Source: Ruditapes philippinarum (taxonomy: Eukaryota). From it: a stretch of DNA of 64,000 nt. This document shows, piece by piece, positions 19,144 to 38,823 of this stretch (positions within the stretch are counted from its first letter, which is position 1; each line of letters begins with the position of its first letter). The notes under the pieces were generated by a model that saw only the letters and a list, made by a program, of their open reading frames with translations, was not told where the DNA came from and ran no database searches. A program made the translations under genes and the position numbers. The stretch lies in the NCBI RefSeq assembly GCF_026571515.1, contig NW_026866023.1, positions 1 to 64,000 on the forward strand, given 5' to 3'.

Positions 19144-22100
19144 TTATGTAATGTCCCTAAGATGCCTATTAAGCAAAGCAAGAACCCTGTAGCGCATTTC
19201 CCTGATGTCCCTTTTCAGATTACTGATTAAATCACGATACTGCTTCTTCCAAATAGGCTTTAGCTTTCTGTTCACATCGTCGTCATCATTTGACCGAATC
19301 TCATTTCCCTCTCGGCCGGACTCGTTTTCGTTTTCATACTCTCGATGAAATCCCTTAAGATGTCCACTGATAGCTGTATATAACGCCTTTATGTTTCGGT
19401 ATACGCTGTTACTAATACGACGTTGACTTTTCTTCATTGACCCGGCCAGACTTTTAAAGAATAATCTGTTTATCAACGATTGGTTAGTGTCTGTATATAA
19501 AGAGATAACAATGTGATAAATTGTCACTTGCAAATATACGTACATGACATTAAGATTAGCCCATCAATAAATGTTTTGTAAAAGATGCTTTTGTAAAACT
19601 ATTTTGTCACATATGTTATGAATTTAAAAACAATATAATAATATACGTCATAAATTTGTGTTATATGCAACACCTGGCACAGAATAATTTCCCTAACAGA
19701 CTGAAAGGGCATAAATTATATCTTTAGAGAATAAACTGCCATTTATTAATTAAGCGTGATGTTAACTAAATGATAGCTGGGAGAGAAGAGACTTCCATGG
19801 AAAACATCAACACATATAATACCATTCGTTATTTTATTAACACTCATTGCCATATACTGTTTAGTTACTTTTGCAAAGATCTAAAAGAAAACAGAAGAAA
19901 TTGCACATATATACGGTATTACAATAGGTCAGTTTGAGTTTTATTGCATTCAAAATTTTATATCGATATTTTGTAACTATACTTACCTTTATGATAAGCA
20001 GAATTACATTTTGTTGCAGAACTATGGTCCGATGATTTTTGTTTTGAAGATGTCGCACTAGAGACAGGGATTGTACTCGAAACTGGAGCTACTTTAACAA
20101 TGCAGTTACAAATCGGTGTAATTGCACATTTGTCCCTTTGGACAGGACGGACTGTGGTTGTTTCTGGAACACTTTCCGTTGTCGTTTGTGATCCGGCGGA
20201 CGCATAATTTTGAGATGCCTCCGTTGTTGCTATAGACGTTTTTATAGACTGTAATAGCTGAGATGTAGATGGTTGTTCAGCATTGTTAGTTGCATCTACC
20301 GATGGTTTCTCAGATGTTGGAAGTTCTGTTGTCAAGTATTCGACATCATCGAACGCTGAGGTTGTAATTCTGCTGTCGAAATTAGGTTGAATATTAGTTG
20401 TGTGTCCATCAAATATATCTTGATATTCTTCATATGTACTTGCAGAAGAAGCACTTGAAGTTGGTAATTTAATAACATTAAGTGTACTTTGCTTATCTTC
20501 AATGGTTGTTGTATCTACACGGGGAGCTTGTTTATCTGAAGTGGGGATAAAGGTTGAGGACGTTGTAGAAGACAAGATATATGAAGTCGACGAGGAAGGG
20601 TTATCCGATGATTTCGCTGTTGCAGCTGTTGTCCATAGAGAAGAAAACGTTGAAGGAGTATGGTTAGCATATGTAAGAGGTAATATCGATGATTGTGAAG
20701 TTGTTGTAGGATTCGATGCTGTTGATGTAATTCCAGCTGTAGTTATTGCTGTTGTTGCAGTAGTAGATGTATGTGACACTGACATTTCTGTCATGGTACT
20801 CAGTTGTGGTCTAGCAAATGGTGTAGGTCCATCGAAGCATGTTAAGCAACATGTCTTCGGTGCATAATCTTGATCGCCGTTCTCACACTCAATCCGCATA
20901 CAATCATCAGACCTATCACCGTATTCACAACCAGTAATCCCGGTAAATAATGCTTCACAAGTCTGGCAACACGTATGTCTAATGTCGGCAATGTAGCACT
21001 GACTTGGTTCACTTACAACAAGGTTGAAGCAGCCTATGTTTGGTTCATTGCCAAATGCGCAAGTGTCAGAGCTCGCGGGAGCACTGTTATTTTCAATACA
21101 GCTACCTTCATGGCAATATTTTTTGTTACCACATGGAGTTCCATCTGCTGGTAGAATAAATCCACAATACTCTGACCCCGGAAATGTACACAATAGTCCT
21201 CCGCAAATTTTCGAATATTCTGTTTTTATTTCTTTACGGCAAACATCTGAGCCCAAACCAAGCGCATTTTCGCATTGCTGTCTACCAGTATATGTAACAC
21301 CGGGCAATTCAGTAATCAATCCGGCTAATTCAGGGGGGTATCTTACTTCTAATGATGATTCTTTCAAGCACGTTAATCCATCATCATTCAGTTCTACTAT
21401 ATAGTCATTAATGTACTGTTCGGAACATTGTGAAAACTTCCATTTATTTGATCCGAATGACTTTATCGGCAACTTGAACTTTGGGACCATCATGTAGTTA
21501 AAGAACTCGAGACAGTCATTGTTGTCCATATCATCTCTTGTACCAAGAGCACGTGCAATTTGCTGGGTTGCAAATGTGACAGTTCTGTATTCGAATATAT
21601 CTTCAACTATTGACGAGTTTGATATGTTTCGACACATCGATGATGCAAATGCTAATCCTGTATTTCCAGGGCTACCAGCATAAGTCAGATTTGTTCCTGT
21701 GAACAGCATTGCATGATCGTATTTTGGAAGAAAATTTGATTCATCAAGCCACTTTTGAAACTTTTCTAGAGCTTCAGATGAATTAACCATTACACGTATA
21801 CTTTCTCCGTCTCCGTCAATAACGCTCTTTGTAGTCCAGTAAGACTCGATCTCAGTTTTAGCAACAAACAATCCAGCAAATGCAAGATCAATTTTAAAAC
21901 CTTGATTTTGAATGCTACCAAACCTGTCGTCGATACCCTTGAATATATAAGCATAATACTGTCTGACTTTTGCCATTATTTCAAAATCCTGGCTATCTGG
22001 CTTGCCAACCATATCTTTCCACCAGCTATATGCTGCAAAATCGATGACCATGAGCAGATCGATAGTCAAATGTTCGATTTCACGTTTTACTCTGTCTTTC

Positions 22101-23413
22101 GACTTTGCTTCCCTCGAATATGTGCCAAAGGCATTGGAAAGTTTGAAATTGGGTAGTTTCTTTTTTATAATGCCCAGTTCGTTTCTCTGATGTTTTTCAT
22201 TGGTCGGGCATTCATCACTTTCACCATTCCTTTTCAGAGAGAAAAAGTGCTTTGATTGATGTGACATTTCGTCTAACGGCTGAATTTCTATGACATTACC
22301 ATCTATGCAAAGCTTTCCTTGTATCTGAAATTGATTTTCCGATACCCTGTTTACTCCAACAAATGTTTGCCCTTGCTTGGCTTGGTATAACTGACGTTTC
22401 GTTTTACCATTTTCGATACTTTCAGCTTTATCACTAAGCAATCCTTGTAAAGCGTCAATTTCATTTGAAGTGAAATCTATTTCATCAAGATATTTTTCAA
22501 GAAATACTTCAAAGAGTGGCTTACTCATCGCGTCTCTATGTATGGATAAAGTAACTGTTTGCGGGTAGCTCTCTTCTAAATCACTGACACTAACCTGTTT
22601 CACGTAAACCATTTCTGAAAATTCAGACATACTTAATTTGTGTGTGCCATTACTTTAAAAGCACAATTTAAAGAAAGTAGAATTCACATACATTTTCTGT
22701 TAGTATTTGTTAGAAATGAATAGCGTTATGCATATGTTTTACTTAATAAAAAAAAACCTTCATTTTGTCGGAAGCAATTCATTCTAAAAATGTAAGGAAA
22801 CGTATTTTATTTGACCAATAATAGTGTATTATATAATATATACTGTTATATGAATTCGTATGTTTTTCAAAGTTTATCCTATCTTTACATATAAGGGAGA
22901 ACGATAAAATGGTCCTTAAACAACGTATGGCACGTTATAATTGAATGCAACTCAATAACCTGATCGCAACGCTTGTATTTCATTTAACTGCTAAGTTCAT
23001 TAATGCTTCTTTAATATTTTGACATGAATCTTTATCTCAATTTACAAGCACTCTTCCATATCTCGTGAAATTGTAGCTTTTAAGCCCGCCAATCATGTTC
23101 ACACCAGTAAGTAAAATTCATTGCACTTCTTTCTATAAAAATTGAATTTTGATAAGGTTTAAAATTGTAGTATATATTGTAAAACTTATGCAATCTAACG
23201 ATCAATAAAAACACATGTGACAAAGTCCATGTTTAGAAATTTTTAATGATAAAAAACTTGATTTCTAGTACTCATAAGATTATAACCATTTCCATATTGT
23301 TTGATTTTTTTTAAATAAAAAATATACATACCCTTTTGTATGTTATATGATTTTCCTGAGTTGATTAATATAAAAATAAACTTAAAGACGAGATTAAACA
23401 TATTGCCCACCAT
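19144..23413 (-). CDS. Secreted ADAM/ADAMTS-like (M12B reprolysin) protein with a degenerate zinc site, cysteine-rich modules, Ser/Thr mucin stalk and helical C-terminus; ~1018 aa (exons 23413-23332, 22614-19987, 19490-19144)
   Basis: Exon 1 MVGNMFNLVFKFIFILINSGKSYNIQK is signal-peptide-like and joins in phase 1 via the ttttcag acceptor. Motifs: furin site RVKR, DLLMVID, YDHAMLFTG, GLAF..SMC, Met-turn YMM, FSQCS, and ADAMTS cys-rich LPG..Y...QQC / ADGTPCG..K.C..G.C. A GTAAGT donor at 19986 joins in frame to the 19144..19545 ORF. Confidence 0.88.
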
Positions 23414-26400
23414 TTTTGTTGACACCGAACGAAATGTTGATCTTTTTCCCGTGGGTAAATATTTTTGGATACGATCTTTTCTTTATAAGGCTAAAGTTGT
23501 TCCCAGTTGTTTGTTGTTATCTTTTTTTCTTCAACTTGTTGTTTTGCTATTGTATAAGCACTGTTCTACACTGTTTACTTTTCATTCTTAGTATGAAATT
23601 TGTTTATATATGTGCATCAACATTATTCATGTATCGTGTTTTTATGTGATGCTGTGCAAAATTTTATGCTGCCCTTTTAAAATATTGTTGCGAATAAGTG
23701 AGATTTTATTCTTTTCTTTCCTTTTTTTTTCGAAACAAAACAATTCTCTTTCTTTTTTTTTAATGTATGAGAAATTTCTTTTTATCAAGTCCCTTGAACT
23801 GGTACAGTAACGTTTCTTTATACACAATATTGAGATGTAGTAGTAAAATATATTTTATGATATAAAAGTACACGTACATAATACGCAAGCAGTAAAGGAG
23901 AAATATTCTTATAACTGTATCTATTTTTTCGGAAATGATAAAAAAATACTTCCCGTAGATATTATGACAGCCTGCACTTTTAAACTGCATAATTTAATGC
24001 AAGACAGAAAAGAAAAAGACATTATATAGCATTATGGAGTTTTTCCTTGAAGTTCTTTAAGAAAACAAAGTTAATAATAATATGTGAAGTCTGTTTCCTC
24101 GTGTATGATTTGTATAGACAGCTAAAACTAATGAAATGAAATGGTATCTCTATGCCCATATATTGTATTGTTGAATCATAACTTTGCAATTCTGTACAAA
24201 GTGATCTAATCTATTCAGAATATACATGTATAAAATGTAAGTATGTTTAAAATGTTTGGAATCTTGTTAATTGAATAAACCGAAATAATTTTAATTTATT
24301 ATGAAGACATGTCAAAAACGTTTTAGTTGCGCGTTTTAAAAAGGAAACATCAAGCAAGCGTGGGCAGGTTCACCGAGTTTAATACATTCACGTCACGGAG
24401 GTTCACATTGTAATAGTATATTAAATCTATTTTCATCAGAACTATTTATTACCTTTGCTATATCTCAGATCTAAAATACGATCTGTTCAAAAATAAATAA
24501 TTTTAATTCTGCTTGTAAACTAATTGTAAAATATGCTTGGCCTTAATGCTGAAATAACTGACAATGAACACGGAAACGTCCCATTTATGTCATGTTGGAA
24601 CACCTATTTTAGTATCCCATTACCAACCTGTTCGCCTTTCTCAGCTTTTCGTCCATTTCCTTCCCTTTTCTATTAATATATAACTAAAACTAAATTAAGA
24701 CTGGTACGCCATTTTATTTTTCAGTTTATTACAACAACCTTATCTTTGAAATACAATTTATATTTTCTTACACAGCTGAAAAATTGATCGTAAAATAAAG
24801 AAAAAAAATAAAGAAGTCAATAATGTTTCATTTATGCTAAATTGCTTTTTCAATGGGTGTGTAATTATTTTTTATCAGGCAAAATTCTATATATTGTTTA
24901 AAATTATGCAAATTTCAGAGAAAAACGAAATAAAAATCCATTATATATTGTCTTTAATCAACTGTATTTCCATGTCTACACTCCCTTTTGACAGATTTGG
25001 GCGTATAATTGAAATAAAAATAATGAATTGACGAAAAGTAGATTGATGAAATCAATGTCACAGCATATGCAAATCCGACTTAGCAGTATTGATAAAAGTG
25101 TGAAAGACGAAAATGTATTAGTAGTTATGTATAATTAACAACATCATCTTTTGCAGAAAAAATTCGTTTAAATCTGTTGTACCACGAACAATGTATAAAT
25201 TAATGTAAAGTCAAAATAAATTAAGTTGGCATTAAATGCCATAACTCTGACTACAACGATTATGCTTCGATTTCATTTTTTATACATAAAAATGACAAAA
25301 CCTTATATTTGCTGACGATTTAGATGCAGGTCAACCATATTGTCTGACTAAGTGACTTCAAATTTATCTGGACATAAATTAAAAAAGTTTTAAAAAGGAA
25401 ATTCGGACAAGGGTATAAAGATACGCTTAACCTTCAAAGTAAAGTATTTACAAATAAAACAAAACTAGTTTGTTATTTATTTTAGACATATATTTCATAA
25501 AAATTAAAGCAATGGCAATGCAAACAATATGGATTTAACAGTGAGCTTTGGAATAACGCAATAATGACAATTATGAAATGGAGTGATTATGGAAGAAAAT
25601 GAAAAATAAATAGGCGCAAAAATGGACAAAAATATAAATGTATAACAGAGTGAATAACAACAAAACAAATATCAAATAAACCAATGAATGTGTTCAATAA
25701 ATAATTTGACATAAAGTGAGCATTACTGTTTCTATGGTAATAAATATATTAATTTAATGAGACAATAGATATTTTACGTTGAATGGGAACATAACGTGAG
25801 CCATAAATCTAGATAAATAGGCAAAACACTTTAATGGCCAACGATTTTCTATGCAAATTTCTTGTTTCATTGTTAACAAAATGAAGATAAATTACCGATG
25901 TAAAATCAACTCGACCAAGAATTTCAAAGCTAACAAATCAACTGTATTGCTACAACAATCTATTCAACATAATAATTATGATCCAACAAGGTCACGAGTA
26001 AGCTATGAATAGAAAGAGACAGTGATTATATAAATATGTTAAATTAAGTGTTGCATCCTTCTGTAAATGATTTCCCTTTTAAAACTATATCCTTACCATA
26101 ACCAATTAGAATCTAGAAAGAAGTTTAGAAAATGAGACTTCAGTCATACATTATTTCATCACATGATGAAAGGAAATTGTTAAAAAGTTTACATAAGGGA
26201 ACAAGGAAACACGAGACTTGGTAACAAAATGATGAATTTCGAACATATGTCACTAACTGAATTTGTCATCATGAATCACCAAAGATACAACCTAGATCTA
26301 AACCTATTTACTCTTGTAAAGGAAGTAGAAAAACTATAAGGTGTTCTATCTTTACTATTATTTCTATAAAGGTATTGTTACTTCAAAATTCAGCGTCTTC

Positions 26401-26966
26401 ATTAGTGCCTAGCCTTTTCCGTTTTTTCTCTTGAATTTGTTAATTAATTTTATGTCAGATATTTTTATTTTATTATATTCTTTTAAATATCTTTTTTTAT
26501 TTCATTTGTCAAAATTTTACGAGAATTGTCAAAACTTTATGCCGGAATATTTAATTTGATTGACAATTTATTTTGGGCATTACGTATTTTAATTTTGCAT
26601 TCTTTTCTATATTAAGGCATGGCCACAAAGTGGAGCTAATTATAGTATCCCATTTGCTTCGTAATTTATTATGATAGCATATGGTATTAAACATCCAAAA
26701 TCCTGATATGTCCTCAAATTGCAAAACTAATCATTAGGGTCAATATTAAATTAAAAGTACAGTATCTGCTGCAGAAAGTAACCAATATATCACCCGAAGA
26801 CATAATAAAGGTCAATTATATCATAGATAATTAAGATATATGTGTGAGTCATATAAGAAGGCATGTCAGTGTAATTAGTATGAGTAAATATTCTACTTTG
26901 CAAATGATGGATGCTAATTATGATAAAAGTAGTAAAGGTGATTCAGATGAAATAAATATTGGAAAA

Positions 26967-26979
26967 AATAAATAAATAA
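26967..26979 (-). promoter_or_regulatory. AU-rich element (overlapping AUUUA) in the putative cytokine 3' UTR
   Basis: Minus strand reads TTATTTATTTATT about 455 nt after the stop codon, with further ATTTA pentamers nearby. The AT-rich background weakens this. Confidence 0.4.
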
Positions 26980-27432
26980 TTACATTAAAATTATTATTTA
27001 AATGCCTTTGGACGGTATCATACCTTATTAAAACAATTCAATAAATTAAGTTTAAATAGAAATAAATATATATAAATTAAATTATATTGCACGTATATAT
27101 CACAGTCATTGTAAAATTGAAACAATTAGTCATTCATTTCATGATATAAACGCCCTCGCTTATACAAATTAAAACATCTGTAATTCAAAAGCTAGAACGT
27201 GAGTTGGGCGAGAATACAATAACGTTTTTCAAAACATGCATCAATAAAGTTGACGGTCGCAACACGACTAGTAACTATCTTTCGTATTGCCTATGCATGC
27301 GTCTATCTTTCTGGTTCTCACGCACACAGTGTAAAATCTGTCAAAAGTATATGATAAAATCACGTTTTTCCGCGAAATATTTGCGTATTTGCATTTAAAC
27401 CTGTACAATATATCGACAAAGGTATACAAGTT

Positions 27433-30073
27433 CTACATCACAGTGAACATTTGCTTTAAAAACCCCATAATGTCCTGACAATCATTCATAAGGTAATATG
27501 CCCTCTTTGTTTCGTTGTATTCTGCTTCTGCATGGGCTTTGAATCTAGGCGACACTAGTTCATCAGAAACAGTTAATTTTGCGGTATCATTTTGTCCTAT
27601 TAGTGCTATTTTGATGTCGCACATGATCTGGTATAGTTGATCTTCAAGAGCACGAAGCTTGCCTTTTAGTGTTTCCGGTCTATCGTGTTGCTTTCCTATT
27701 CTATCACTAGTTCTTGCATATTCTGTGTAACTTATAAGCTTCGACAGTAGTTTGTAGTGGTCTTTCAAAGCTAAACTAAACTGAAATATAAAAAAAAGCA
27801 GAGATAATAAGAAATACTTTTTCCTGTCTAGATGTGCGGTTTTCGTTAAAGGACCGCACACAGTATGTATAATGTAATTAATTTTCTCAAACAAATGAGC
27901 GATTTCTTTTATACATTGGATCAATTCAATGATGCAAAAGTAAGCGTGTTTGAAAAACAACAATTTTATGTAGCTATAAACATCAATGCATTTGCCCCTA
28001 GCAATTATTTTAAACATTAAATGCAGCAAAGGTGTGTTAAACGTAAAATGTTTATTTAAGGTTTGTCAAGTGATGCTGTAAGATGATTAACTCACTATCA
28101 AACTTTTCAGAATCATTATTTATCACCACTTTCAGTAACTTATATCAACCAAAAGATACACGCAATGCTCTTGTCAGTTTTTGTTGCTAATATAGTTAAT
28201 TAATTTCTTAAATACTTACATTTGTCGATGCTTTTGTTTTCTTTTTGTCAGTAACTGTAAATTCTTCTTTTGATATGAAGTTGAATGTTGGTAAATTTGT
28301 TTCTTGTATTTCCGTTTTTATCTAAAATCAAAAATAGCACATTTGAAATAAAGATATATATCAAGCAAATTTTATCAAATTTATGGATATAAAGTTAAGA
28401 GTTATCAAATACACGTACTTGCAGGTTTATGTTATATTTTAGGACTTATATAACCATAATGAACGTTATGAAAATTGATAGAATGAAAGAGAAGAAGTGT
28501 CAAAACACATGTTTGACGTTCTTTCATTGGTCTGGAAAACCCCGAAATGTTTTATAAGTTCTTTGATAATCTCATAACAAGGACGATACGCATAAATCAT
28601 TTTACTTCCCCTTTATGCAGTTAGACAAATCTGTTTTATTCTATTAACTTTTAATTATTTCCTAGTGAATAAATTAATCTTCACAACACAGCCAATGTTC
28701 TAAAAAAAGATCAGTTTTCAGTCGTGATTGATGCGACAGATAAGGAAAATGTAAAACTGCTACCGCATATTTTCCTTTACCGCAACTTAATTGTTATTAA
28801 ACATAGGTCGAAACGTTAAAAACCGCTTGAGTGACCACATAAACGGTGTAAGCGTTTAACGACAGTGATTCAGAATATGAATGGAATTCCACGGTATAGT
28901 AAACGACATGAATTGACGTGTTACGTTAACTTTTACGTGAATATACGTTATTGGTCATCGAGTCACTGTTACAGTATACATTGGTTTATCTACCTATGAA
29001 ATGACCAATCCTAATTAATGTATACGAACGATTTTGTTGCCTGATTTACATGAGAACAATACATGTAAAACAGATTTACACTTGTTATACAAATATGCTT
29101 CAAAAAGAGCTATTGCCCCCGTAGCAAATTATATATATAATTCTGCAGAAAAAAAATATTTACTGTATATAATTCACTTCCTAGCACGAACTTAAAGCAT
29201 TAAACCTTTTCCAAAGTCACGCCTTTTCTGCAGTGCCTCTCAACATTTAAATGCTCAGCTCTTTTAAGAAAAGTGTCCTCAGAAATTTCATACTTATAGT
29301 TCATTACATTTTGCTAATATTTATCATCATACTTTTCATCATTTAACTTAACTCTAACATTGACACTTTAACTCTGGCTATATCTTAAGCTTCAAAAATA
29401 AAAGATCCTTACAAAGTCTTTGATCCTTTTAGCAGTGTCATTGACACCTGTTGTTCGTTTGATAAGGTCATCCATCGTAACATCTTTTGGCTGAATCACA
29501 AATTTTCCTCCTTTATTAAGAACATTACATGGTTTTTCAGGTTGAAGTGATGCTTGCAAAATAGGATTTGCATTTGACATTGCTAACATAACAGTTAGAA
29601 ATAGTCCTGTTAATTGTCTACAAGTATAGATGTGACCTGAAAGAAAATTTATAAGAAAATTAAGTTTAAAAAGATCAAAATAATATAATAAAGATATAAT
29701 AATAATAATTTAGAATGAAAAATAACCATCGCTTCAGCTTATGAAAGAATATATAAATATATAAATCTTAATGCACTTTTGAATATATATGTATTCACAG
29801 AAATATTTAATTAATTATCATCATTATCAGTATCTAATTCAATATTTTATCATTGTCATAAAGTAATCATGTTTTTTTATCAATAAAACATTCATTTTCT
29901 TCTCTTAATTATTATGTTGCCTGTTCAATATGTATTTGAAAAGCAAATATTTATTATATTAAATGTTTAAATCGTAATGAAAATTGTAAATTATCTAAAT
30001 TGCTGAATATTTTTCTATGTATTTTATACTTACAAATTTTCTTAAATACTTTTGATGCTAAATTGTTTTTCAT
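27433..30073 (-). CDS. Secreted 237-aa putative long-chain four-helix cytokine, IL-6/Unpaired-like (exons 30073-30034, 29636-29413, 28321-28220, 27780-27433)
   Basis: Donors GTAAGT/GTAAGG/GTAAGT and pyrimidine-rich acceptors give an open 714-nt frame: MKNNLASKVFKKICHIYTCRQLTGLFLTVMLAMSNA|NPILQ...TMDDLIKRTTGVNDTAKRIKDFIKTEIQETNLPTFNFISKEEF...FSLALKDHYKLLSKLISYTEYARTSD...TLKGKLRALEDQLYQIMCDIKIAL...ETKRAYYLMNDCQDIMGFLKQMFTVM*. The gene model is well supported; the family assignment is inferred from helix pattern and intron phases. Confidence 0.75.
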
Positions 30074-30148
30074 ATTTTTGTCTAATTATCACAATGTTCT
30101 TTCTAGCTGACAAAATAATTTATTGTTTGAATCTCGCCATAATCTACC

Positions 30149-30427
30149 TTTTATATGAATCAATTGATGTCATTTAGTACATGAGAGATCTCCCCAATTA
30201 CAAAAATATCTAAAAATAGTATTTTATGAAACTTTCTTACCATCCTACTATGTATACATCCAGCGAGCACATGCTATAAAACCCGGAACAACACTCCGTG
30301 ACCCTCCCAGTGTTACGCTATTTGTTTTAAAAATCCGCGTCGCGTCTCACGGTATGTTTCACACGCTCTTCACAAATTACGTTAAACGTTAAATACTGGG
30401 CGGTAAAATTACTCGAAGGGAATTTTC
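30149..30427 (-). promoter_or_regulatory. Putative inducible promoter: TATA box (30149-30155), CRE/AP-1-like TGACATCA (30165-30172), kB-like GGGAGATCTC (30185-30194), kB site GGGAATTTTC (30418-30427)
   Basis: Motifs read directly from sequence; TATAAAA lies ~76 nt upstream of the ATG. Confidence 0.6.
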
Positions 30428-32169
30428 TGTTTACTCTATTATGACCAAGTATTCTCCATATTTAGCATTGTAAGCCAAAAAAAATCTGAAATTTATGCCT
30501 GGCTCTAGGTCTTCCTTTTAGCGATACGCCTTAAATTAAGCATGATTTTATGTTTAATGATGAAAATATTACTGCAATAATAGAAACCATATTAATTTGA
30601 TGTAACAGCTGTATGACAGTAATTAAACTATCACTACGTCACTCGACAACTTACAACATTGAGGGAGTGCAGATTCTGATATACTGACACGAACAATATT
30701 TTAAAAGTACAATGTATATATAAAAGTATTTTCTCTTTAACGTATCTCAGACGGTATGTTTAAACAGGAATGACATATATTCGAACTTTGAGACTATGGT
30801 TATTTCTTTTCCGCCCTGCTTTTTGATTAATAGTGTTTGTTAAAGACCTAAACGGGATGTTATTATTACCTGCGTTATTTTGAAGTATTTCGCTTGTGAG
30901 ACACTGTTTCTATGAATGTAATTAAACTATGTAGATTATGACACATTAACCTGTATCTAACTCATAAATTTATTTAGCCTAGTGAACTAGCTAGCACTTC
31001 TGGATCATTTGCAATCCAAATCAGACCATGCTTGTAAATGTTAATGATAATTGATAACAATGCATTCATACTGAATCATAATAATTGCTTCAACTTTTAC
31101 AACTTCAGCTTTTTCATATGTACAATTTTCTCATTTAACATGTGTAAGGTATTTTTCATTTTGTTGAGATAAATGAATCTGAAGAAAACGAAATACAAGA
31201 AATGTAATGATGTTTTGCTCAATATTTCAAGGTCGGGATGGTCAATGATCAAATAGCCAAAATTCTGTGGTTTCGCTACAAGGTAGGGTCAACCAATCAA
31301 CAGTTATTAGCAAATGGCTGACGTTTACACCTGTCATGTTTGATTGATAATCGAATGATGTTCATTTATAAGTATAGATATTTAGCGAACAGATTTATTT
31401 TAACAAATAGTGCACCTTTGTGATATTTCACCATTATTACTGAAATTACATATTGTTTGAGTAATACATTTGTTATTAATAGAATATTTGATAATGCATA
31501 ATGCTATTTTTGGTGACAATTACGCTTATAAATAATCATTATCACCGTTAATATCAAATACTTGATAAACGTTATAAAACATAGATATATTTCATAAACG
31601 TACAATAAGAAACAAAATTATAATATTGATATAAAAGTGGTTTTACAGAAAATTATGTTTGATAAACCACTAGAGTGACTGCTACCCTGACATAAGTATC
31701 TCCATGTTTAGCAATTTCATTTCATTGTGATTTATTTTACCAGAAAACAAACTGGGAATACTCCTAAAAATAAGCAATCGACAGGCTTAAATTTCTGTTG
31801 TTTTTGGTTGTTTTAGAAAGAATTTCTAACTAAAAGTTTTTAGGTAGGTACAAGACAGTCTTTAGCGAATGTGTTTAAGTTATTAGAGACAGTTATTACA
31901 ATAAATGGCATAAAATACATAGCCTGATTTCTATGGAGATGTGATCTAAATTTTTGTCTTTTCTTAACTTATTTATCGTTTTATATAAAGGAGCTTGAGG
32001 GTATGTCCCTACTGTGTTAAGGTATGCTGCAATGCTTATATTAGTGTTTACCCCTTTACAGTTGGACACTACGTTTTCCTCTTTTTCTGCTGTATTTTTG
32101 TATTCTCTACCTTCATTTAATAAATGGAATGGGTTTTCCGTGCCTTGACGGCATTCTACGTAACTTATC

Positions 32170-36753: not shown

Positions 36754-38823
36754 CTAAAACACTCTGACATGACACAAAAGACAATTTTTGTGCTTTCTTT
36801 CTTTCACATACGGAAGAAGAAATCTAGCAACTTCCGGGTAATGAATGTCAGCATTTTCCCCATTCTTGACAAGAAGCTGCAGATTTTCGACGGCTTGCTG
36901 TCTGTGTACGGGTCTATGGATATTGTTATAGGACAATGCTAGAAGAAAATAGGCATACACATTAGCGTCCACAAAGACAAACCCTTTATGATCTGTATCA
37001 TCGTCTGTAATCGGTTCCCGATCTTTCAGCATCTGTATCGCTTCAGGGGCATACGCCACTTCCCATGGGGAGAACGCTATCTCTAATGCAGCCCATTCCA
37101 GCAAAGATGGGGCATTTCCTAGTAGAGACGTAACCGAGCGATGCTTCCGAAGAGACAGCGGTCGTTTGCATGATTTCATCCTCCTGGTTTTATCACCAGT
37201 TGTGTTAACGATGTACTCGTTAAATTGCCGAAGAAGTTGCATAATAATTTTGATACTTTCGTCGTAATTTTCTGTCATGTAGTGAAATGTAGCAAGTTTT
37301 AGTTTTGTAGCAGCAGCATCTACACCAGCTGCATCATCAAGGTATTTCACTGCAGTCGGTAAAAGGTTTTGTGACCCTCCTTTCCGGTTGTAAGGGTATG
37401 TATTTGACAGACCCATATAGAGTATGCCCAAATGACTTTTAATCACCTGTTTGACGATCCCAGTTGCCGGAACATCAGGAAAGTGAACCGGATCGCGCAT
37501 TGTCGGGTATTCGAGAAACATAAGCATGGCGTCTATCGTTCCCTGAATATCGGGTCTTTCCGTGAGACGCAGAACAACTCGTATTGTCATGTTGAACATA
37601 GTGTAACATCTTTCCACCATGGAAACGCTTCTTTCACAGCCTTCCGTGCCCCAATGTGTGTCACAGCAATCACATCTTATCTGTATTTTATGCCTCGCTA
37701 AAAGCATATTGAGATTTGGCGGGAGACACTGTAAAATGCATTGCCATCCCTTTTCTAGAACTCCTGTAACTACAGCAGCTAGCCTGATTCTGGTATCCCC
37801 CTGTAGACGTGGCAAAAATAGATTATGACTCGGGATGAAATAATGTGGCAAACTTCCATCCTCAAGACATTGCAGTAGTTTCTGCAAACAGCCAACAAAA
37901 CATGCTGCAAGTTTCTCCCTTGTCCATTCAGCAGGATGTGTACTTTCGACCATATGGAGCATGATCGTTTTAACCTGATATGAAGTGATCCCTTCAATTA
38001 CCATTGGGTTGATAACATACGTTACCAGTAGTTTCACAAGAAAATAGCACTGCATTTGTGTAATGTTGAATGTGCGAACCAGAAGCTTCTCGGCTAATGA
38101 AAATGACCATCGCCATTCAATATGCTTGTTTGGACTCTGTGAGTTTCCAATAGGAACAACGTGACATCCATGCTGTAGAATGAATTTCTTCAATTCCACG
38201 GTTGGCCAAATATACCTTCTCACTCTAAACGCCCATTCCCTTGCAGCGAGGGGCCATACTGGTGAATGGATGCATAAAATTGGAGAAATTGTATTTCTCA
38301 TAACACCAGATATTGCAGGCGCACTTATTGTACCTGTAGTATTATTGCTGTATGCATCAGTCAGAAGTTTTCCCGCCAAAATCATTCTTCCTTGTTCGTC
38401 TGCCAAACAACAATTTGGCGTCGACATTATTGATCTACTTGGACTTGTACCCATGAAAACACATTGTAATCTGACATATGATGGGTGGTATGTTTGAATG
38501 ACCTTGAAAAGGTGTGACTCAGCTTGACCTTCAGACTGCCTCTGCGGGGCAATCCTAGTACCTGACACAGTCATCATTACATTGATATCTGACCCGAGGC
38601 GCTCTAGAGCGATGCCCTCTGCTGAACTTCCGACATTTATTGCATGAAACATGTAGTCAACGTCAGACCCGTAGTTAGCAATACCCTCAATACTAAAAAG
38701 TGAGTTTGAATAATCACTGAACCAGTTCCTTTGTTTAATATCTTCTTGTGCCATTCCCACCTCACAACAAAGTTCATACAGGTGCAAAGAATCCCGTTCT
38801 GTTTGCTCTACGTTGTTCCACAT
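36754..38823 (-). CDS. Mab-21/cGAS-like receptor (cGLR) with C-terminal TPR-like helical region; catalytic triad degenerate
   Basis: 689-aa ORF with GSSAEG...SDxxxM, WP..A.EW..R.R...WP, GCHVVPIG...EWR.SFSLAEK.L, YFLVKL, ITSYQVKTIM, W....L..C...CL..L..CL..G.LPHYFIP..NLF: the invertebrate Mab-21 NTase signature. The C-terminal KLKLATFHY and YAYFL motifs are typical of bivalve cGLR-TPR proteins. Confidence 0.92.
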   Translation of the reverse strand: MWNNVEQTERDSLHLYELCCEVGMAQEDIKQRNWFSDYSNSLFSIEGIANYGSDVDYMFHAINVGSSAEGIALERLGSDINVMMTVSGTRIAPQRQSEGQAESHLFKVIQTYHPSYVRLQCVFMGTSPSRSIMSTPNCCLADEQGRMILAGKLLTDAYSNNTTGTISAPAISGVMRNTISPILCIHSPVWPLAAREWAFRVRRYIWPTVELKKFILQHGCHVVPIGNSQSPNKHIEWRWSFSLAEKLLVRTFNITQMQCYFLVKLLVTYVINPMVIEGITSYQVKTIMLHMVESTHPAEWTREKLAACFVGCLQKLLQCLEDGSLPHYFIPSHNLFLPRLQGDTRIRLAAVVTGVLEKGWQCILQCLPPNLNMLLARHKIQIRCDCCDTHWGTEGCERSVSMVERCYTMFNMTIRVVLRLTERPDIQGTIDAMLMFLEYPTMRDPVHFPDVPATGIVKQVIKSHLGILYMGLSNTYPYNRKGGSQNLLPTAVKYLDDAAGVDAAATKLKLATFHYMTENYDESIKIIMQLLRQFNEYIVNTTGDKTRRMKSCKRPLSLRKHRSVTSLLGNAPSLLEWAALEIAFSPWEVAYAPEAIQMLKDREPITDDDTDHKGFVFVDANVYAYFLLALSYNNIHRPVHRQQAVENLQLLVKNGENADIHYPEVARFLLPYVKERKHKNCLLCHVRVF

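Follow-up and report, generated by a model that had tools for sequence, protein, structure and literature searches.

Molluscs possess cytokine-type receptors, JAK and STAT, but, to our knowledge, no accepted helical cytokine ligand. The question raised here is whether such a ligand is encoded at 27433-30073 on the minus strand of a 64,000-nucleotide stretch of DNA from the clam Ruditapes philippinarum (NW_026866023.1, positions 1 to 64,000; the whole stretch is hereafter the window), where an earlier note made from the letters alone had proposed a hidden four-exon gene for an IL-6/Unpaired-type cytokine. The explanation that appears probable as a whole is an expressed, single-copy clam gene whose product is a secreted protein of the long-chain class-I cytokine fold, acting as a ligand of class-I receptors that signal through JAK and STAT.

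That the gene model is correct and the gene expressed is beyond serious doubt. A local script joins four minus-strand exons into a 237-codon open reading frame (ORF) closed by TAG, with intron phases 1-0-0, and all three introns start with GT and end with AG preceded by a pyrimidine tract. Coding exon 1 (30034..30073; 40 nt) opens with ATG, holds 13 codons plus 1 nt and encodes the n-region of the signal peptide; beyond the phase-1 intron 1 (29637-30033, GT..AG), exon 2 (29413..29636; 224 nt) supplies the signal core, a Pro-Cys motif (Cys50) and, from 29478, most of helix A. Intron 2 (28322-29412, phase 0) separates it from exon 3 (28220..28321; 102 nt), which completes helix A and encodes the long AB loop, and intron 3 (27781-28219, phase 0) is followed by exon 4 (27433..27780; 348 nt). 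There, helix B (27777-27709), a short BC loop, helix C (27669-27595) with the near-invariant Cys176, a long CD loop and helix D (27513-27439) follow one another up to the stop codon TAG (27435-27433).

Transcript contigs of runs X1, X5 and X6, from three independent studies, were aligned on 26600-30900. Those of X5 and X6 reproduce all three predicted joints exactly and those of X1 the first two, so the joints of introns 3 (27780>28220) and 2 (28321>29413) are each found in three studies. The joint of intron 1, present in X5 and X6, reads 29634(+2)>30032(+2), that is, 29634>30032 with a two-base ambiguity compatible with 29636/30034. Most intron sequence is uncovered by the contigs, and their coding differences are synonymous third-position changes in four of four cases. 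In a broader sample, words drawn from 27300-30300 were recovered at 7-27% in RNA-like runs (n = 14, from nine studies) and at 58-69% in DNA runs; exons and parts of the untranslated regions (UTRs) amount to 881 of the 3001 bases of this interval (~29%), near the top of the RNA-run range. The gene is single-copy in the genome. At 27773-27930 and 28300-28549, X1 contigs of low depth (2.6-3.5) cross from the exon ends into introns 3 and 2, probably reflecting unspliced precursor or intron retention.

The spliced four-exon, 237-aa gene with canonical sites drawn in the earlier note is thus borne out both by the script and by exact transcript joints, RNA sequencing from three studies containing the spliced message. 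The description of the gene as hidden was also fair, as none of the protein collections searched contains its full-length product: a word-based protein search with exon 4 recovered nothing beyond a 142-aa ORF call without splicing and a single fragment of 69% identity, and the same kind of search with the full-length alignment added almost nothing.

The fold was modelled with AlphaFold2 for the closest full-length relative, the Mya protein P0066, using a 67-row alignment. The model is of high confidence (predicted local distance difference test, pLDDT, 88.7; predicted template-modelling score, pTM, 0.82) and consists of helices A (43-72), B (107-130), C (143-167) and D (192-227) in an up-up-down-down arrangement, with long AB and CD loops, a short BC loop and three mini-helices within the long AB loop. 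In a Foldseek comparison with 350,542 PDB chains, all listed matches were long-chain class-I cytokines (prolactin, IL-11, IL-27 p28, growth hormone, G-CSF, CNTF, OSM and IL-6), with template-modelling (TM) scores up to 0.80-0.81 and root-mean-square deviations (rmsd) of 3.0-3.4 (prolactin, TM 0.80 and rmsd 3.1; IL-11, TM 0.80-0.81). VIA-align, a tool independent of Foldseek that was run on 48,161 representative chains, gave Z-scores of 17.3 for IL-11 (rmsd 2.5, 164/165 residues), 16.2 for OSM, 16.0 for CLCF1, 15.7 for both CNTF and placental lactogen, 15.1 for IL-27 p28, 14.3 for LIF, 14.1 for IL-6 and 13.7 for IL-23 p19. Interferons reached 11.4 or less, leptin 10.8, the first non-cytokine 9.3 and ferritin-like bundles 7.5 or less. 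The top matches cover the whole domain, exceed the tool's caution line for helical bundles (~13) and stand well above the unrelated rows. On these models the family very probably adopts the long-chain four-helix class-I cytokine fold, a conclusion that we regard as well supported, and the cytokine fold read from the letters in the earlier note is upheld by a high-confidence prediction whose best matches are IL-11, OSM, CLCF1, CNTF, LIF and IL-6.

Language-model features of P0066 point to long-chain cytokine families only (0.95-0.91), and its neighbours include a molluscan cluster with Pfam IL6 in 11% of members and two arthropod clusters (0.94). Exon 4 of the window gene also points to long-chain cytokine families only (0.91-0.80), a result that serves as a lead only because recognition falls under the tool's line. 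In an AlphaFold2 model of the exon-4 product alone (pLDDT 65.8), helices at 2-24, 38-62 and 90-114, separated by a 13-residue and then a 27-residue loop, coincide with the segments previously called B, C and D; taken alone, this model gave no discrimination in structural comparison. A viral structure library yielded no meaningful match and no mollusc-virus mimic.

Judged by sequence, the window gene is a member of a large lophotrochozoan family, a point absent from the earlier note. Exon 4 as a query found 21 further loci in the 1.41-Gb clam genome and a second-subfamily query nine more exon-4-like loci, which together with the exon 4 of the window gene give at least 31. The paralogues form tandem clusters on contigs C544, C8732, C6045, C792, C9127, C4295, C3509 and C8909; identity between subfamilies is ~25-31%, and the window gene is a divergent member. 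Some copies carry in-frame stops (e.g., C8732:27894-28196 and C6045:33097-33309) and are probably pseudogenes. A profile built from 13 exon-4 pieces (A1) and run against 1.84 billion representatives matched 64 proteins at an expectation value (E) of <=1e-3 and 33 at E<=1e-10; an Ascaris ATPase among the 64 is a false match. Named full-length members belong to Mya arenaria, Mercenaria mercenaria, Ruditapes philippinarum, Tegillarca granosa, Mytilus edulis and M. galloprovincialis and, beyond bivalves, to the gastropod Gigantopelta aegis and the brachiopod Lingula anatina, and all those looked up are annotated “uncharacterized”; the family is referred to as uncharacterized LOC128218222-like.

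Members share a signal peptide, a Pro-Cys motif close to the start of the mature protein, Met-Cys (near-invariant) within helix C and Tyr/Asp/Leu/Tyr in helix D, with Y18, L42, M53, C54, Y95 and L108 as invariant exon-4 columns; the window product has the family marks, including Pro-Cys and ALKxH at the start of helix B. Over exon 4 it shares 40% identity with Mya P0066 and 67-69% with P0002 (by alignment and by BLASTP), the latter a 69%-identical relative that has kept its reading frame, and exon 2 can be aligned collinearly with the N-terminal region of P0015 from Mya arenaria (BLASTP E 2e-7). A further alignment (A3), in which the exon-2 and exon-3 products had been added as rows, was left out because these rows were misaligned. 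The RefSeq paralogue P0007, rebuilt from contig C3509 at 223/223 residues, has only two introns, both of phase 0 and at positions matching window introns 2 and 3. The 423-aa Mercenaria mercenaria protein P0009 (LOC128558855) has ~300 unrelated residues at its N-terminus, followed by a C-terminal half of the family type, and is probably a mis-merged model or the result of a transposon insertion.

The window product looks secreted and glycosylated. Its signal-like N-terminus has a basic n-region, the 12-residue hydrophobic core LTGLFLTVMLAM and then SNA|NP, with predicted cleavage after Ala36 (at 29569); the hydrophobic signal noted earlier is thereby recovered, and the N-termini of relatives are signal-like too. 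The predicted mature protein has 201 aa, a mass of 23.1 kDa, an isoelectric point of 9.0, four N-X-S/T sequons and three cysteines (50, 176 and 223). Of these, Cys223 lacks the family-wide conservation of Cys50 and Cys176; because there are three, one cysteine would be free or would link a disulfide-bonded dimer. Two further arguments of the earlier note concern the NLP tripeptide and the intron phases. The NLP tripeptide is present and has no weight as evidence. Genes of IL-6 and G-CSF have a short first coding exon and a phase-1 intron followed by phase-0 introns; the 1-0-0 phases of the clam gene are confirmed, the paralogue P0007 shows phase-0 introns only, and the proposed parallel is tentative.

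In the proposed mechanism, the protein, once secreted, would engage one or more class-I receptors of the Domeless/IL6R/gp130-like type at their cytokine-binding modules and draw receptors together, by which JAK and STAT would be switched on as they are by IL-6-family cytokines and Drosophila Unpaired. In Mollusca, IL6R-like receptors, JAK and STAT are reported to co-occur “in the absence of a canonical IL6 ligand”, and the same 2026 survey places IL-6-type ligands in vertebrates only (PMC13203501). STAT exons are present in the clam genome; the DNA-binding exons occur with identical scores at G000:C8568:186015-186933 and C14010:12564-15573, which may be haplotigs or a recent duplicate. The window gene is transcribed, of the secreted type and has an IL-6/IL-11-like predicted fold, and is therefore a concrete candidate for the missing molluscan JAK/STAT ligand. 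On balance, we lean slightly towards a function as a receptor/JAK-STAT ligand. A wider hypothesis, that the family comprises the native ligands of the molluscan IL6R/Domeless-like-JAK-STAT module and shares descent with vertebrate IL-6 cytokines and perhaps arthropod Unpaired, is tentative and, in our view, rather doubtful.

Several observations weigh against the ligand reading. At the level of sequence, no kinship to IL-6 or Unpaired, as suggested in the earlier note, was found: neither the three exon products (at E<=10) nor 14 family members (at E<=1) had a Pfam match, be it to IL6, CNTF, LIF_OSM, IL11, Hormone_1 or another family, matches of the family profile among PDB sequences stayed at chance level, and the 20 profile matches looked up from the 1.84 billion representatives included no arthropod name and no Upd-sized protein. 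The high-confidence model is that of the relative P0066 and not of the window's own product, and the Foldseek E-values are weak, at 0.016 or worse. Co-folding of the window's own exon-4 piece with its mature exon-2 piece lends weak support: the interaction score from aligned errors (ipSAE) was 0.60 against 0.01 for the best control, with >=87% contact agreement between runs and partner pLDDT >=60. Of 78 solved complexes, 51 reach the co-fold mark, as do 2 of 108 mismatched pairs, and values at 0.60 or under include only 5 of the 78 solved complexes and all 4 passing mismatches (of 180). Genome scans for the receptor domains PF09240 and PF06328 were blank, with controls equally silent, and are uninformative; the transcript runs are coded and carry no tissue or stimulus labels; the cysteine count of the mature protein is odd; and signalling ligands do not usually come in families of at least 31 copies, a size that could suit an effector role. 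Among the chance-level PDB-sequence matches was a staphylococcal complement inhibitor (E 0.09), which was rejected. None of the three findings that the earlier note named as refuting emerged: a spliced transcript exists, the predicted fold is of the up-up-down-down four-helix type, and no clear match to an unrelated known family turned up in the searches.

The alternative that survives best, although we consider it unlikely, retains the fold and drops the receptor. The product would then be a secreted immune effector (for example membrane-active or lipid- or glycan-binding), a binding protein, or a decoy or antagonist, in a family diversified by host-pathogen conflict. The size, clustering and fast divergence of the family, with some of its loci bearing stops, speak for such a role, as does the missing sequence link to cytokines in the Pfam and PDB profile searches; moreover, a common fold does not prove a common function. 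Against it may be set the convergence of secretion signal, end-to-end IL-11-like fold and a molluscan pathway lacking its canonical ligand, on which the preferred ligand reading is built.

A class-II cytokine of the interferon/IL-10 type, possibly related to the oyster protein CgIFNLP, is distinctly less probable. Class-II interferon genes have intron phases 0-0-0-0 (bioRxiv 10.64898/2026.05.30.728932), whereas those of the window gene are 1-0-0, and the best structural matches are not of class II, the IL-6 family scoring clearly higher in VIA-align (14-17) and matching nearly end to end; no Crassostrea protein occurs among the named profile matches. The last alternative, a decaying or non-coding locus transcribed with a functionless ORF, is scarcely credible: although the full-length product is missing from the collections searched and some paralogues contain stops, the 237-aa frame is intact over four exons, all four coding polymorphisms of the transcripts are synonymous, P0002 keeps an intact frame at 69% identity, and the conserved family residues are retained.

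The cytokine-like gene, as the preferred reading has it, also has a long AU-rich 3'UTR (25521..27432, minus strand), of which 26600-27432 is covered by contigs. Its length is put at ~1.9 kb because the X5 contig continues 1079 bases past 26600, which places the probable end near 25521. With 22 AUUUA, 9 UAUUUAU and 3 UUAUUUAUU motifs, it is the AUUUA-richest 1.9-kb stretch on either strand of the window, where the mean per stretch is 7.9 +/- 4.1 AUUUA and 1.3 UAUUUAU. Cytokine and early-response messages that turn over quickly typically carry AU-rich elements, and this 3'UTR suggests a message that is short-lived and inducible. At the other end, the 5'UTR extends at least over 30074..30107 (minus strand), the X5 contig reaching 30107 and the X6 contig 30086; no upstream ATG lies within 30074-30107, and A occupies position -3 relative to the start codon. 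A TATA-like box, TATAAAAGG (30147..30155, minus strand), lies 48 nt upstream of the furthest contig 5' end (30107) and may serve as the promoter.

Two intronless ORFs in the same orientation flank the gene. At 36757-38823 (minus strand), ~6.6 kb upstream, a 689-aa ORF contains Mab-21/cGAS-like domains (PF20266, E 4e-19; PF03281, E 4.6e-5). At 19961-22630 (minus strand), downstream of the long 3'UTR, an 890-aa ORF matches reprolysin (PF01421, E 6e-10) and the ADAMTS cysteine-rich domain (PF17771, E 2e-12).

The fold class is already known, and database entries for the named family members describe them as uncharacterized and nothing more. In the open-access literature, a scope in which absence is not proof, no account of a helical class-I cytokine from a mollusc was found. 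Such genes escape sequence-based annotation, and the window gene is an example; the analysis names candidates from clam, mussel, snail and Lingula that lend themselves to expression and to testing with receptors and haemocytes. These candidates would bear on the origin of class-I cytokines, on invertebrate immune signalling and on the disease biology of farmed bivalves. If descent were shared, IL-6-type helical cytokines would date back to the bilaterian ancestor, and the family would provide the first lophotrochozoan class-I cytokines.

Compared with the vertebrate IL-6/gp130 cytokines (IL-11, OSM, CLCF1, CNTF, LIF, IL-27 p28 and IL-6), no sequence similarity is detectable (~10% identity in structural alignments, Pfam negative); the clam product has a different cysteine pattern, namely the N-terminal Pro-Cys and the helix C cysteine, and is encoded by four coding exons in a family of at least 31 copies. 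With growth hormone, prolactin and placental lactogen (Hormone_1) it shares no sequence similarity and no pituitary-type context, and growth hormone itself has a lower VIA-align Z-score of 12.5. Among molluscan proteins, oyster CgIFNLP has been reported to bind the cytokine-receptor-like CgIFNR-3 and to activate STAT reporters (PMC8218723). Both it and the clam product are molluscan secreted cytokine-like proteins, CgIFNLP being described as interferon-like and compared here by description only. The Drosophila ligands of Domeless, Unpaired 1-3, belong to a group of proteins of ~400 aa, and two arthropod clusters are among the nearest neighbours of P0066 in language-model features. The role proposed for the clam product is analogous to that of Unpaired: a protostome secreted helical ligand of a gp130-like receptor.
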